DNA of 64,000 nt, taken from the NCBI RefSeq assembly GCF_006345805.1, contig NC_043026.1, positions 496,001 to 560,000 on the forward strand, in the 5' to 3' direction. This DNA is from Octopus sinensis. Taxonomy: Eukaryota. Under the pieces are notes generated by a model, which saw only the letters and a list, made by a program, of their open reading frames with translations, searched no databases and had not been told where the DNA came from. The translations under genes were made by a program, and so were the position numbers. Shown here one piece after another: positions 1,062-17,274 of this stretch; position 1 is the stretch's first letter, and each line of letters begins with the position of its first letter.

Positions 1062-1225
1062 ACAACGCCCGCCATTGAGAAATAATTATGGGAGCTCGTT
1101 GCCAGATCGTCCCATGGGGAACTTTTCAGGTTTTTAGCAGAGAACCAGTTTTCAAGAGTTGTATTTCGTCCATTAAACACCATTGTTACTACGGCTGTTT
1201 CCTTTTTGTATAACACAAGTTTCAC
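1062..1225 (-). CDS. Gene A coding exon 3 (unnamed mollusc-type domain)
   Basis: Acceptor ttttcag|GTG, phase 0. Translates VKLVLYKKETAVVTMVFNGRNTTLENWFSAKNLKSSPWDDLATSSHNYFSMAGV. Probable donor GT|GTAGGT at 1061; otherwise the frame stops at TAG 1058-1060. Confidence 0.8.
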
Positions 1226-1675
1226 CTGAAAACAACAACAAAAAAACAACTTTTTACATTGCAAGTTTTACATGCGCATGCCTGTTTGTATGTGTGTGTG
1301 CATGTGAATGTAGGTACGAGTACGTATGCGTGTATGTGTGTATATATATATATATATATATATATATATATATATATATGTGTGTGTGTGTGTGTGTGTG
1401 GTGTGTGTGTGTGTGTGTGTGTGTGTGTATAATTCAAATAAACAAAACGGATACCTGCATTACCTCTGGATATCTTTGTTGGTTATTTTGATTTTAATCA
1501 CCTTACTTTGAAATTGTATGGATAATACCGTACTAAATTCTGGTGCCTCAACCTGAGTATCATAGCTATTCTTGCTGCAATAGTGACAACATGAAATTCT
1601 TCCGTCCTCTTGCTCGGTTAAAGTATTAAGAAAAATTACATCAATATATGTTGTCTGTTAAAAATCCATATTTCT

Positions 1676-1761
1676 TGCAGCTGAAGATAGCGCTGTATTT
1701 AAATTGATCTAATGACTACATTTTTCAATTAAATAGAGCTGCTTGAAACGGTCGTACTGCA
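1676..1761 (+). ncRNA. Type I hammerhead ribozyme (Penelope-type, minimal stem III)
   Basis: UGCAG-CUGAAGA-long stem II (UAGCGCUG...AAUUGA / UCAAUU...AGCUGCUU)-GAAA-CGGUCG-UA-CUGCA. Stem I has 5 bp, stem III is ACG-GU-CGU, and the GUA cleavage site follows 1756. Confidence 0.75.
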
Positions 1762-1876
1762 CTACTGCTTGACATCCTGTTACTTATTTACTTATATATA
1801 TATATATATATATATAAGTAAATAAGTAACAGGATGTCAAGCAGTAGTGCTTGAGATGTGGAACACGAGTTGTGTA

Positions 1877-2135
1877 TATAAAAAAGGAAATGAAGAAAAT
1901 GCTGACAAAATAATTTAAGTAATTTAAGTAATTTAATTAGGTGAAGTTTTTTTTACCGGTTGCGCATTTGTTATGCTTATTAAAAGTTTTTTCCTCTTAT
2001 CGTCAGATAAGAGGAAAAGAGGAAAAAACTTTTGATAAGCATAACAAATGCGCAACCGGTAAAAAACTTTTCACCTAATTAAATTACTTAAATTACTTAA
2101 ATTATTTTGTCAGCATTTTCTTCATTTCCTTTTAT
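1877..2135. mobile_element. Palindromic MITE/foldback
   Basis: ~120-bp arms aaggaaatgaagaaaatgctgac... / ...gtcagcattttcttcatttcctt, flanked by TA repeats. Confidence 0.8.
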
Positions 2136-2616
2136 ATATATATATATATATATATATATGTATAACACACACACACACACACACACACATATATATATAT
2201 ATATATAATTTTTATACAAGAATGTTGTTGACAGTGACTTCTAGGTTTCAGACAGTTAATTCATCGTCGGCTAAACCATATTTATATGATTCACAGGAAT
2301 GAAGCGCACAAGAACACATACACATACACACACACACATTCACACACACATTCACACACATTCACACACATACGAACACATTCACACACATACAAACACA
2401 CTTACACCACACATAGAAACACATATATTGCGTGCTTCAGTCACTGAGATGCGTCCATGCTGGAGCATCTCCTTGAAGGGTTAGGCGAGGAAATTCAGCT
2501 AAGTTCCTGAAATACAAGGGATTAATATTTAAAAAAATATATAATGAAAGTAAGTTGGTGTGTCTGTGTATAAACATATGTACGTATAATATGTGTGTGT
2601 GTGCGCGCATACATAC

Positions 2617-2794
2617 CTGATAATTGGAAGACTCTTCCAGATATCGAGTATTGGATGTCGGAAGAAATTTGGACAATGGATACCATTGCATTTGTCCACA
2701 TTCCAAGTTGAAGGACTTCCTATATTGAGTATGGAATTATAGATTAACGAATTTGCTCCCATTGATATGGCATAAGTTTTAATCCATTCACTAC
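2617..2794 (-). CDS. Gene A coding exon 2
   Basis: Acceptor tttcag|GTAGTG, donor AG|GTATGT. Translates SEWIKTYAISMGANSLIYNSILNIGSPSTWNVDKCNGIHCPNFFRHPILDIWKSLPI. About 90% identical to gene B exon 17096-17274 but 1 nt shorter (178 vs 179). Confidence 0.85.
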
Positions 2795-3000
2795 CTGAAA
2801 TAGTAATAATAATAATAATAATAATAATAATAATAATAATAATAATAATAATAATAACAATAATAATAATAATATAATATAATAATAATAATAATAATAA
2901 CAATAATATAATAATAATAATAATAATAATAATAAATAATAATAATAATAATAATAATAATAATATAATAATAATAATAATAATAATAATAATAATAATA

Positions 3001-3506
3001 TCATGTACAGTGTTATCATGTACATTGTTTTGTCTTGGTATAAAAGATGGGCTACAGCAAATATTCTGCTCAATACCACAGATTTGCTTGTCAGTTGTTT
3101 GACCTTAACCAGTTGAGCATGTCCCTTAGTGGCTGACGATATGTGCATCTCTGATCACGAGCAGAAGTAGTGGGGGAGCATCATAGCCATGTGTTGAGAA
3201 GGATTCTTTGGGGTTTGAATAATTCACCTCTGGAAACATGGGTGGTTCTTTCAACATCCTTAAACAACCCTTATTCAGGGACCTTTTGAGCGGGATGGGC
3301 TACTCAATCTGAAGGAAATTCTAACTGGGCCCCACCTGCAAGGTCATGTGCTGTTTATCTTGATATGAGATCACCATGTCGCGCACATATGGTTGTGATG
3401 CATGTGCCTGGTGTACCCTTATCAGACGGGTAGTCATGATGGGTATATTGGGCTTCGTATATTTTACCCCAGTGTCACTTTGATGGCATGAACTGCTCTC
3501 TCACTC
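3001..3506 (+). mobile_element. ~500-bp non-coding interspersed repeat inserted in (TAA)n
   Basis: A reverse-complement, internally deleted copy lies at ~51935-52425, also flanked by TAA/TTA tracts. Confidence 0.7.
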
Positions 3507-14565: not shown

Positions 14566-14589
14566 ATACGTACATATAGTTGCATATGT

Positions 14590-15185
14590 ATACTCACACA
14601 CATGCACACACACTCATTATATATACTCACACACATGCACACACACTCCTTATATATACTCACACACATGCACACACACCCATTATATATACTCACACAC
14701 ATGCACACACACCCATTATATATACTCACACACATGCACACACACCCATTATATATACTCACACACATGCACACACACTCCTTATATATACTCACACACA
14801 TGCACACACACCCATTATATATACTCACACACATGCACACACACTCCTTATATATACTCACACACATGCACACACACTCATTATATATACTCACACACAT
14901 GCACACACACCCATTATATATACTCACACACATGCACACACACTCCTTATATATACTCACACACATGCACACACACTCCTTATATATACTCACACACATG
15001 CACACACACTCCTTATATATACTCACACACATGCACACACACTCATTATATATACTCACACACATGCACACACACCCATTATATATACTCACACACATGC
15101 ACACACACTCCTTATATATACTCACACACATGCACACACACTCCTTATATATACTCACACACATGCACACACACTCATTATATAT
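14590..15185. repeat. 33-bp minisatellite, about 18 copies
   Basis: Unit tatatatactcacacacatgcacacacac(t/c)c(a/c)t. It explains the spurious 11-aa-repeat ORFs. Flanked by duplicated SINE tails (14512-14560 and 15187-15233). Confidence 0.9.
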
Positions 15186-16257
15186 AAGGCGGTGCTTTAG
15201 CATGGCCGCAGTCAAATGACTGAAACAAGTAAAGAGAGAGAGAGAGAGAGGGGGGGAGGGAGACAATGTGTGTGTGTAAGAGAGAGAGAGAGAGTATTTC
15301 TTTATTCACCATAAGGTTGAGAAAAAGAGGGGACAATATGGGGACAGACAAAACAAACGTTGGGGGTCAGGGTATCGAATGAGACGAAACGTATGAATAA
15401 ACAAACAATTAAAATATATACAATTAAATGAGAATGAGTGATTAACAAAAAATGAAGCGGAGGAAACGGTCGACCCCACAAACCACAGACTCACACTGAA
15501 GACTTTGCTTTATCCTTTTTTACATTCTCGTTTAAACAGGTTCTTTCACTCGCAACATGCTTGCTATGTACTTCCAGACTTTGCCTTTCTTCCTTTCGGG
15601 GTCGACTAAATAAGTACCAGTTACGCACTGGGGTCGATATAATCGACTTACTCCCTTGGTCTGTCCGTGTTTGTCCTCTCTATGTTTAGCCCCTTGTGGG
15701 CAATAAAGAAATATATATACTTCCATCTTTTACGAAACACACTTTGCGACAGGCATTTCTTCTCCAGCCTTATTTTCCGTTTCATGTGGAAAACTAGACA
15801 AACAGACAGACAGACAGAAAGAAAGAGCGTGTGGGTGCGTGTGTGACCAAGTGTGTGAGAAAGTGTGTTTGTGTGAATGTGAGCATGTGACTGTGTGTTT
15901 GTGCATGTGTGTGTTTGTGTGTTAGTGATAGTGTGTTAGTGTGTGAGTGTTAGTGTGTGCGTGTGTGTGTGTGTTTGTGTGTTTGTGTGTTTGTGTGTGT
16001 GTGTTTGTGTGTGTTAGTGTGTTTGTGTTTGTGTTAGTGTGTTTGTGTATGTTAGTGTGTTTGTGTGTTAGTGCTAGTGTGTTTGTATTTGTGTTTGTAT
16101 CTTCCACTATTTCAGTATCACGTGTCAAAAGTGAAACAATAACATCTCTCTACTTTCACTTTGATAGTTTCACTATTGATACTGAAACTATTAAAGTGAA
16201 ACTTTTATTAAAATGAAACTATTATCTCACATATACTCAGACATACATACATATATA

Positions 16258-16500
16258 TTGGGTTGTCCGGAAAGTTCGTGCCGATTTAGAGTAGCTTACC
16301 TTTCGACTTATTTTAGAACATGGTTGAGTCCATAAAATAGGATTTGACTACACCTCCATTTAGAGCAGAGTTTATGTTCAACAAGAAGCTTTATATGCAA
16401 CAAAATGGTTCATATTTGGCTGATTAAAAATGTAATGGCAAGTATTTATTGACCTTTTCCTTTCCTTTAAGAATCAGCACGAACTTTGCGGACAACCCAA
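16258..16500. mobile_element. Mariner-type MITE
   Basis: TIRs ttgggttgtccggaaagttcgtgc / gcacgaactttgcggacaacccaa with TA flanks. Confidence 0.8.
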
Positions 16501-16659
16501 TATATAGTATATATATATATATATATATATATATATAATATATATTATATATATATATAAATTTAAATATAGTAGAGTGTATATGTATTGTATGTAAGTA
16601 CGTATATCTCTGCTGATTCTAGGCTCAGGATTTACCGGTTTCCTTCTATTAGTCCAGCC

Positions 16660-16960
16660 ATGACTACAACGCTGATATTAACCCTTGCAACAATTCTGAC
16701 CGTTACCTCGAATCAAGAATTTGATGAAGCTTACTACAAACCTTTGGAAACTGGTTATTCCTATGGTTATATTGGGACATCTCCAACAGAACACTTCCCC
16801 ACCGTATCAAGTCTACAGGAATGTGCCTTCTATGCTCTAAACAGCCAATCAGAATTCTTTACTTACAACAAAGTCAGCCGTGTTTGTAAGAATTACTCAC
16901 CGAAAGATATAATGGAAGCCGTCAGCACGAGTGACACCAACGAGATTTCCTACTACAGAA
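16660..16960 (+). CDS. Gene B coding exon 1: signal peptide + PAN/Apple-like domain
   Basis: Acceptor ctgattctag|G at 16623, ATG at 16660. Translates MTTTLILTLATILTVTS...SLQECAFYALNSQSEFFTYNKVSRVCKNYS...NEISYYR. Donor A|GTAAGT. Confidence 0.85.
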
Positions 16961-17095
16961 GTAAGTGAGTTATCATCGTCATCATCATCATCATCATCGT
17001 TGTTGTTGTTGTTGTTGTTGTTATTATTATTATTATTATTATTATTATTATTATTATTATTATTATTATTATTATTATTATTATTATTATTTCAG

Positions 17096-17274
17096 GAAGA
17101 GAATGGATTAAAACTTATGCCATATCAATGGGAGCAAATTCGTTGATCTATAATTCCTTCCTCAATATAGGAAGTCCTTCAACTTGGAATGTGGACAAAT
17201 GCAGTGGTATCTATTGTCCGAATTTCTTCCGGCATCCAATACTTGATATCTGGAACCATCTTCCAATTGAGCAG
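17096..17274 (+). CDS. Gene B coding exon 2
   Basis: Acceptor ttcag|GAAGAG, phase 1 to 0. Translates REWIKTYAISMGANSLIYNSFLNIGSPSTWNVDKCSGIYCPNFFRHPILDIWNHLPIEQ. Donor CAG|GTTTGT. Confidence 0.85.

Follow-up and report, generated by a model that had tools for sequence, protein, structure and literature searches.

A divergent pair of paralogues from an octopod family of PAN and FReD-like proteins in Octopus sinensis

Two genes that face away from each other in a 64,000-nucleotide stretch of Octopus sinensis DNA (the window, placed by sequence mapping at CM016888.1:496001-560000) raise the question of whether they form a working, co-regulated pair or are ordinary members of a larger gene family. 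Six-frame translation of open reading frames (ORFs) and direct reading identified two gene copies with canonical splice sites in this eukaryotic, AT-rich window, which carries microsatellites throughout: gene A (LOC118768482) on the minus strand and gene B (LOC115226727) on the plus strand. An earlier note on this DNA had described them as secreted PAN-domain paralogues diverging from a short spacer that holds an inverted, duplicated promoter. The account that we regard as probable is that A and B are two divergent members of an octopod-specific tandem family of PAN plus fibrinogen-related domain (FReD)-like proteins, of which A is broken, probably by assembly errors, and B is a pseudogene, and that they share no promoter.

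The diverging copies and the spacer between them

The coding exons of A and B align with each other in inverted orientation. The exons that carry the ATG and the PAN-like domain match at 76% nucleotide and 62% amino acid identity (5036-5513 against 17091-16613; tblastn E 6e-35), and the next exons match at 93% and 90% (2609-2872 against 17282-17018; tblastn E 5e-34). This similarity is far above chance and marks A and B as diverging paralogues, as the earlier note had it. The outer limits given to the pair also hold, since 1062 (the last base of A exon 3) and 17274 (the last base of B exon 2) coincide with splice boundaries and are thus exact exon ends. The exon structure claimed for both genes is common to them over exons 1 and 2, but exon 3 is present only in A, and the motif string of exons 2-3 that had been ascribed to both genes is confined to A; B has no exon 3, 4 or 5 in the window, including the 47 kb downstream of B. 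Exons 4 and 5 of A lie past the left end of the window by ~110-275 bp and ~1030-1085 bp. The annotated products, P0003 (192 aa) for A and P0027 (LOC115226727, 163 aa) for B, are both 100% identical to the window, and A exon 1 corresponds at 100% identity to P0003 residues 1-111 (tblastn).

The ATG exons are separated by 11.1 kb (5503 to 16623), not by the 3-4 kb proposed, and no inverted promoter was recovered between them. Comparison of the two upstream halves in mirrored orientation (blastn, word size 7) returned only CA/TG-rich matches of up to 37 nt, with E ≥ 1e-4. The inverted homology of A and B ends 16 nt upstream of A's ATG, at a common 3′ splice site, and an alignment of the 400 nt that precede the ATG exon in five copies (A, B, those of O. 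vulgaris and the O. bimaculoides orthologue) shows GCTGATTC(T/C)AG, the 3′ splice site, as the only element common to the paralogues. A duplicated promoter finds no support in this. Both ATG exons have this same acceptor (CTGATTCTAG, directly before the exon boundary) 6-7 nt ahead of the ancestral ATG, and it is kept in four paralogues or orthologues. A shared acceptor in this position makes the short 5′ non-coding exon of the earlier note plausible, although the exon itself was not located.

Long inverted repeats in and around the spacer comprise only CA/TG microsatellites (70-80% complementarity), copies of short interspersed nuclear elements (SINEs) and fragments of long interspersed nuclear elements (LINEs); two inverted LINE fragments (4454-4757 and 6361-6664), 98% identical, lie on either side of A's exon 1. 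Phylogenetic footprinting of A's upstream sequence against O. bimaculoides gave collinear blocks of 77-92% identity, compared with 88% for the block over the ATG exon, and is uninformative because upstream identity is no higher than that of the ATG-exon block and the O. bimaculoides locus is heavily N-masked. A bidirectional promoter implies start sites within ~1 kb served by one promoter; the coding exons here lie far beyond that distance and have no shared block between them. With neither a shared inverted promoter nor a short spacer, the suggested co-regulation has no basis.

The octopod family and the state of each copy

With the joined exons of A as database query, 51 clusters at 90% identity were retrieved, all octopod (O. 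sinensis, O. bimaculoides, O. vulgaris and Argonauta) and with every entry named 'uncharacterized'. Most members are on one chromosome-scale scaffold per species, which agrees with the lineage expansion suggested in the earlier note. An intact member has five coding exons and encodes ~296 aa. No paper was found in the literature for twelve LOC identifiers of the family or for octopus PAN plus fibrinogen proteins. Comparison of A with B gives Nei-Gojobori omega values of 0.51 (exon 1) and 0.33 (exon 2), neither of which signals positive selection. Synonymous divergence (dS) falls from 0.47 in exon 1 to 0.17 in exon 2, and the lower value suggests that exon 2 was homogenized between A and B by gene conversion.

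Gene A is the orthologue of O. bimaculoides LOC128251093. Its exon 2 measures 178 nt here, compared with 179 nt in an intact copy, and ends in CCAATTATCAG before the donor gt in place of CCAATTTATCAG before gt. The missing base maps to 2623-2622, where the window has TT, and a second O. sinensis copy (described below) and O. vulgaris have TTT; this loss takes the frame into a stop within exon 3. Two further single bases are missing from exon 4 (GG>G and AA>A), and all three changes are 1-nt homopolymer contractions. The frameshift at 2622-2623 probably accounts for the SINE-derived terminal exon of the 192-aa NCBI model P0003 (Table 1), which would be an artefact of annotation.

The second copy (L004, CM016888.1:699128-725676) is located 214 kb away from gene A (488437-511497), on the same scaffold and in the same orientation. 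The two copies match at 99% over at least 23 kb, introns and repeats included, and L004 is intact at all three sites, encoding the 296-aa LOC115226528 (P0195, in the 90% cluster of A). Substitutions between L004 and the A locus amount to 0.11-0.18%, and the two main aligned blocks contain 140 indel events, of which 95 are changes in homopolymer length, a combination that is the signature of long-read error. PMC11202624, citing Li et al. 2020, describes the O. sinensis assembly as built from PacBio reads and Hi-C. The A orthologue of O. vulgaris is likewise intact at all three sites; its exons 1, 2, 4 and 5 are intact, and exon 3 carries one frameshift of its own, in an A-run. Because a copy that differs by so few substitutions encodes an intact protein, the three contractions are probably assembly errors, and A is most probably a working gene whose frame is broken in this assembly.

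Gene B has decayed further. Where the ancestral start codon was, both O. sinensis and O. vulgaris have ATT (16630-16632 in the window), and B is annotated from an internal ATG at 16660. Collinearity with O. vulgaris stops at 17276, two bases past exon 2, at a break that may be a rearrangement or an assembly mis-join and that further truncates B in O. sinensis. In O. vulgaris, B exon 3 lies ~2 kb downstream, with its middle swapped for unrelated sequence (net -19 nt, frameshifting); exon 4 is present, exon 5 was not found in the O. vulgaris B locus, and another tandem copy follows. Intron 1 measures 2.4 kb in O. vulgaris, compared with 135 nt in O. sinensis. We note a 570-aa ORF in this O. vulgaris intron (L003 10527-12239, minus strand), presumably a transposon insertion. 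The lost start codon, the missing exons 3-5 and the disrupted O. vulgaris exon 3, together with the retained introns, identify B as an unprocessed pseudogene. A and B are not two working genes: B is a decayed partial copy, and the frame of A is interrupted in this assembly.

Protein architecture and the C-terminal domain

Intact members consist of a putative N-terminal signal peptide, a reduced PAN fold and a C-terminal domain of 185 aa. P0001, the orthologue in O. bimaculoides with 84% identity to A, was modelled with AlphaFold2 (predicted local distance difference test score (pLDDT) 80, predicted template modelling score (pTM) 0.79); residues 1-30 are disordered (pLDDT <50) and the PAN region (residues 31-110) is modelled at pLDDT 77-91. 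Foldseek matches residues ~35-110 to the HGF NK1/N domain with a probability of 0.96-1.0 and a root-mean-square deviation (rmsd) of 2.7-3.3 Å over 82-90 columns. The template modelling (TM) score of the N-terminal domain to 3hms is 0.64, and the Sarcocystis PAN lectin SML-2 is also matched. The model has the helix packed on an antiparallel beta-sheet that defines the PAN fold, as in the HGF N domain. Pfam scans covered the window proteins, ten paralogues, 71 relatives and selected multidomain relatives. PAN_1 was significant in 16 of the 71 more distant relatives (best E 6.8e-8). The window proteins fall below the Pfam PAN thresholds (PAN_1 PF00024 and PAN_3 PF08277), with 14.5 bits to PAN_1 for B (cut-off 21.4) and no PAN match for A; full-length paralogues score 12-17 bits to Pfam PAN models against cut-offs of ~21. 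Two core disulfides characterize PAN domains and three characterize apple domains; here only C65 and C86 are conserved (18 of 18 sequences). The PAN domain of the earlier note is thus upheld by the modelled fold and by the relatives.

A hydrophobic stretch, VTILLLVNLATI, occupies residues 11-22 (Kyte-Doolittle 2.46), six conserved cysteines are spaced as three putative disulfide pairs, N-x-S/T sequons are conserved, and the partner domains of relatives are only extracellular. The proteins are therefore probably secreted, as had been proposed.

For the C-terminal 185 residues there is neither a Pfam model nor, by single-protein or profile searches, a sequence match in the PDB, and no transposon Pfam match was found for exons 2-3. 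The earlier note's view of these exons as an unnamed domain is borne out. The domain is not confined to molluscs. In a full HMMER scan, the family profile matched 1,129 cluster representatives at E ≤ 0.001, 664 of them at E ≤ 1e-10; counted as clusters at 50% identity, more than 1,100 carry the C-terminal domain. Matches with named sources come from amphioxus, crinoids, sea stars, corals, bivalves, gastropods and Myxococcota. In a second database search, a broad profile returned only 'uncharacterized' proteins as relatives of the domain. The domain is often present in several copies, in company with Sushi, EGF, C-type lectin, TSP1, SUEL lectin, F5/8 type C, VWD, ZP, D8C and PAN domains.

Structure and domain context both point to FReDs. 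The domain-only AlphaFold2 model (pLDDT 84, pTM 0.83) finds fibrinogen beta/gamma, ficolins, angiopoietins/ANGPTL, MFAP4 and FGL1 as 47 of its top 50 PDB fold matches, at weak scores (Foldseek E 0.07-0.5, TM 0.33-0.44). In five relatives, nine copies of the domain begin directly after the CDMTTDGGGW of FReD subdomain A. That stretch corresponds to positions 4-61 of Pfam Fibrinogen_C and also matches COLFI; in the PDB it matches tachylectin-5A, fibrinogen beta, tenascin, FIBCD1, intelectin and XEEL, none of them beyond subdomain A. In the octopus proteins, the cysteine pair C239-C255 around GW mirrors the C...GGWW...C motif of FReDs. A coral protein (P0158) has the architecture PAN-EGF-FReD(A)-domain, that is, the octopus layout with linker modules kept. 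Subdomain A (C-D-M-x-T-x-GGGWT) is absent from all octopod members, and their domain opens with EWIKTYAIS straight after the PAN exon. The domain most likely corresponds to the B/P part of a FReD, strongly diverged, with subdomain A lost in octopods.

Pfam DUF7922 was not adopted as an identity for the domain. It scored 32 bits (cut-off 25) within one copy of the FReD-like domain of amphioxus P0052, at residues 459-490 and over the conserved WFS...SPW motif, and was found in no other scanned multidomain relative; it is not among the families reported for the 71-member set or for the octopus proteins. Giant bacterial proteins from Myxococcota or metagenomes (P0089, P0098 and P0110, with TIG or FG-GAP repeats) contain two to three copies of subdomain A with the domain behind it, which suggests horizontal transfer between animals and bacteria.

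Rival readings, wider content and known systems

Under the reading that we favour, the octopod family would be a tandem expansion of secreted PAN plus diverged-FReD proteins, encoded by five coding exons behind a predicted, unlocated 5′ non-coding exon, and the C-terminal domain would be a FReD without subdomain A, fused directly to PAN. Gene A would be a gene whose frame is interrupted by three 1-nt contractions that are probably PacBio assembly errors or else the mark of a very young or false duplicate, and B would be a decayed partial copy, with 11 kb of satellites and transposon debris between the two. PAN and FReD-like modules typically bind glycans or proteins, and intact members are predicted to be secreted, glycosylated, lectin-like recognition proteins that bind either. 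By analogy with ficolins, tachylectin-5A, mollusc FREPs and intelectins, they may serve recognition in immunity, mucus or skin, and the tandem expansion would resemble those of invertebrate immune or mucosal recognition families.

Several observations weigh against this account. No Fibrinogen_C (PF00147) match was found in the window proteins, ten paralogues or 71 relatives, and the family profile finds no FReD in the PDB. The FReD fold matches are individually weak, none reaching E ≤ 0.001, with probabilities of at most 0.57 and rmsd of 7-9 Å. The canonical Ca2+/acetyl-binding motif of FReDs is not evident, D-x-D-N-D being absent from the consensus by eye. The FReD link that we infer is one of superfamily and not of Pfam membership; the defining sequence tests gave no match. 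At the locus itself, the frameshifts of A might be real, and the NCBI model of that gene is a truncated protein of 192 aa; the locus 214 kb away would be a segmental duplication of very recent date or else a haplotype left uncollapsed (false duplication). The 5′ non-coding exon is predicted, as are secretion and the transcription of either gene.

For the locus, the reading that would make A and B two working, co-regulated secreted paralogues with an inverted duplicated promoter in a short spacer is very improbable. The divergent orientation, the common exon structure and the NCBI annotation of both copies as protein-coding are in line with it, and the length and content of the spacer, the end of inverted homology just upstream of the ATG, and the loss from B of its ancestral start codon and exons 3-5 are not. 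A closer contest concerns gene A, which could be a genuine, very young pseudogene, left with three real frameshifts by a real duplication of at least 23 kb in which LOC115226528 stayed intact. The three indels are, after all, in the deposited assembly, both copies share one scaffold and one orientation, and their NCBI models differ. We nevertheless consider such a pseudogene rather unlikely, because every one of the three changes is a one-base homopolymer contraction, the indel and substitution spectrum between the copies is that of long-read error, the assembly is PacBio-based, and none of the three sites is disrupted in the O. vulgaris orthologue. Assembly errors in a working gene A are thus the preferred explanation.

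For the C-terminal domain, the alternative is an independent fold that merely adjoins FReD subdomain A in some proteins. It would account for the lack of sequence matches to Fibrinogen_C or to solved structures beyond subdomain A and for the weak Foldseek scores; it would leave unexplained why nearly all of the top structural matches are FReDs, why the domain of the relatives starts right after GGGWT, where the B subdomain of a FReD would, and why the cysteine pair around GW mirrors that of FReDs, and we judge it unlikely. Derivation of exons 2-3 from a transposon protein might be expected in a locus filled with LINE, SINE and Tc1 debris, and is effectively refuted by the absence of a transposon Pfam match; the domain also belongs to spliced genes with conserved intron phases, and relatives combine it with extracellular modules. 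A diverged FReD remains the preferred identity. A more far-reaching proposal, which we put forward tentatively and with some doubt, is that the domain represents an undescribed, ancient branch of the FReD superfamily, with more than 1,100 clusters from cnidarians to cephalochordates and in Myxococcota, and that octopods lost subdomain A, fused the remainder to PAN and expanded it to at least 50 tandem genes. If true, this branch would be a new class of secreted recognition lectins with their own ligand specificity.

The features of the two genes and of the surrounding sequence are compiled in Table 1. A further annotated gene extends from ~26443 to past 35838 on the minus strand; its 392-aa product is unrelated to the family, and an ORF within this gene (29357-29710) resembles a transmembrane segment plus cytoplasmic tail. 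Elsewhere, the window contains remnants of the helix-turn-helix of Tc1/mariner transposases and a fragment of a Pif1 2B domain (Helitron-like), at 40987-41532 and 43047-43514 on the minus strand and 57110-57487 on the plus strand.

Table 1. Coordinates of the gene A and gene B features, the spacer and the adjoining sequence, as positions in the window
Feature	Position	Strand	Remarks
Gene A coding exon 1	5167-5503	-	From sequence reading; putative signal peptide and PAN-like domain
Gene A exon 1 signals	AG 5505-5504; ATG 5497-5495; GT 5166-5165	-	Acceptor AG, ATG, and donor A/GTAAGT; phase 1
Gene A intron 1	2795-5166	-	2.37 kb; trinucleotide microsatellites and LINE fragments (3654-4016, 4454-4757)
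Gene A coding exon 2	2617-2794	-	178 nt; SEWIKTYAIS...FFRHPILDIW...LPI
Gene A alternative terminal exon (NCBI 192-aa model P0003)	2437-2506	-	Exonised antisense SINE-like fragment; ends ...RNLAEFPRLTLQGDAPAWTHLSD and stop
Gene A coding exon 3	1062-1225	-	VKLVLYKKETAVVTMVFNGRNTTLENWFS...SPWDDL...NYFSMAGV; donor GTAGGT 1061-1056, phase 2
Spacer between ATG exons	5504-16622		Satellites and transposon debris
LINE reverse-transcriptase tail	6308-7114	-	ORF in spacer; zf-RVT match
125-bp satellite	8673-9523		~6 copies; spacer
CA-rich ~75-bp minisatellite	11.1-11.85 kb		Spacer
180-bp and 681-bp repeats	12.1-14.0 kb		x3 and x2, respectively; spacer
SINE-like copy	14162-14566		Spacer
33-bp minisatellite	14453-15310		~25 copies; spacer
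GT/CA repeats	15.8-16.1 kb		Spacer
Gene B coding exon 1	16623-16960	+	PAN-like domain; acceptor AG 16621-16622, donor GT 16961-16962, phase 1
Gene B intron 1	16961-17095	+	135 nt; ATC/GTT/ATT microsatellite
Gene B coding exon 2	17096-17274	+	179 nt, intact; ends ...LPIEQ before gt; last family exon of B in the window
Breakpoint and SINE-like element	17277-17751		Element ~400 bp (17343-17751); from O. vulgaris comparison
Assembly gap	19033-19132		100 N; downstream of B

Had the two genes diverged from a mirrored promoter, they would have offered a neat example of promoter duplication; no such case is present, and the locus is an ordinary stretch of a tandem family with a pseudogene and assembly problems. 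It illustrates how probable homopolymer errors and a possible false duplication in the PacBio-based O. sinensis assembly yield shortened gene models, one of them ending in an exonised SINE. The sole part of wider interest, and a moderately interesting one, is the unannotated FReD-like domain. The use of these results lies mainly in annotation: this domain is extracellular and widespread, lacks a Pfam model and can be linked to the FReD superfamily, which suggests glycan or pattern recognition as a hypothesis open to testing, both for the octopod cluster and for hundreds of 'uncharacterized' proteins of corals, echinoderms, bivalves and amphioxus.

Among known systems, FReD lectins (ficolins, tachylectin-5A, FIBCD1 and mollusc FREPs) are secreted, as the octopus proteins probably are, and resemble them in the C-terminal globular domain, which gives the best though weak fold matches, in the subdomain A that precedes the domain in the relatives of the octopus family, and in the cysteine pair around GW. 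FREPs in snails and bivalves also underwent lineage-specific tandem expansion, as in the octopod family. Unlike these lectins, the octopus proteins have no Fibrinogen_C match, a PAN domain where subdomain A would be, no recognizable Ca2+/acetyl motif and no collagen-like or immunoglobulin superfamily (IgSF) stalk. Intelectins and XEEL offer a parallel in that FReD is detectable by sequence only in a short N-terminal stretch, the remainder being a family-specific fold; intelectin-1 and XEEL are among the sequence matches to the relatives' subdomain A and among the fold matches. In contrast to them, the octopus proteins lack even the FReD-like N-terminal stretch, and they gave no sequence match to the intelectin-specific region. 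PAN/Apple domains (the N domain of HGF/plasminogen, and apicomplexan MIC4 and SML-2) share the fold of residues ~35-110, PAN_1 is detected in part of the relatives as given above, and the family profile weakly matches the apple domains of Toxoplasma MIC4; the octopus proteins differ in having one conserved disulfide (C65-C86) instead of two or three. The coral PAN-EGF-FReD(A)-domain proteins (Pocillopora, P0158), all annotated as uncharacterized, share the N-terminal PAN and the C-terminal domain with the octopus family (E 3e-33 to the octopus profile), but keep EGF and FReD subdomain A in between.

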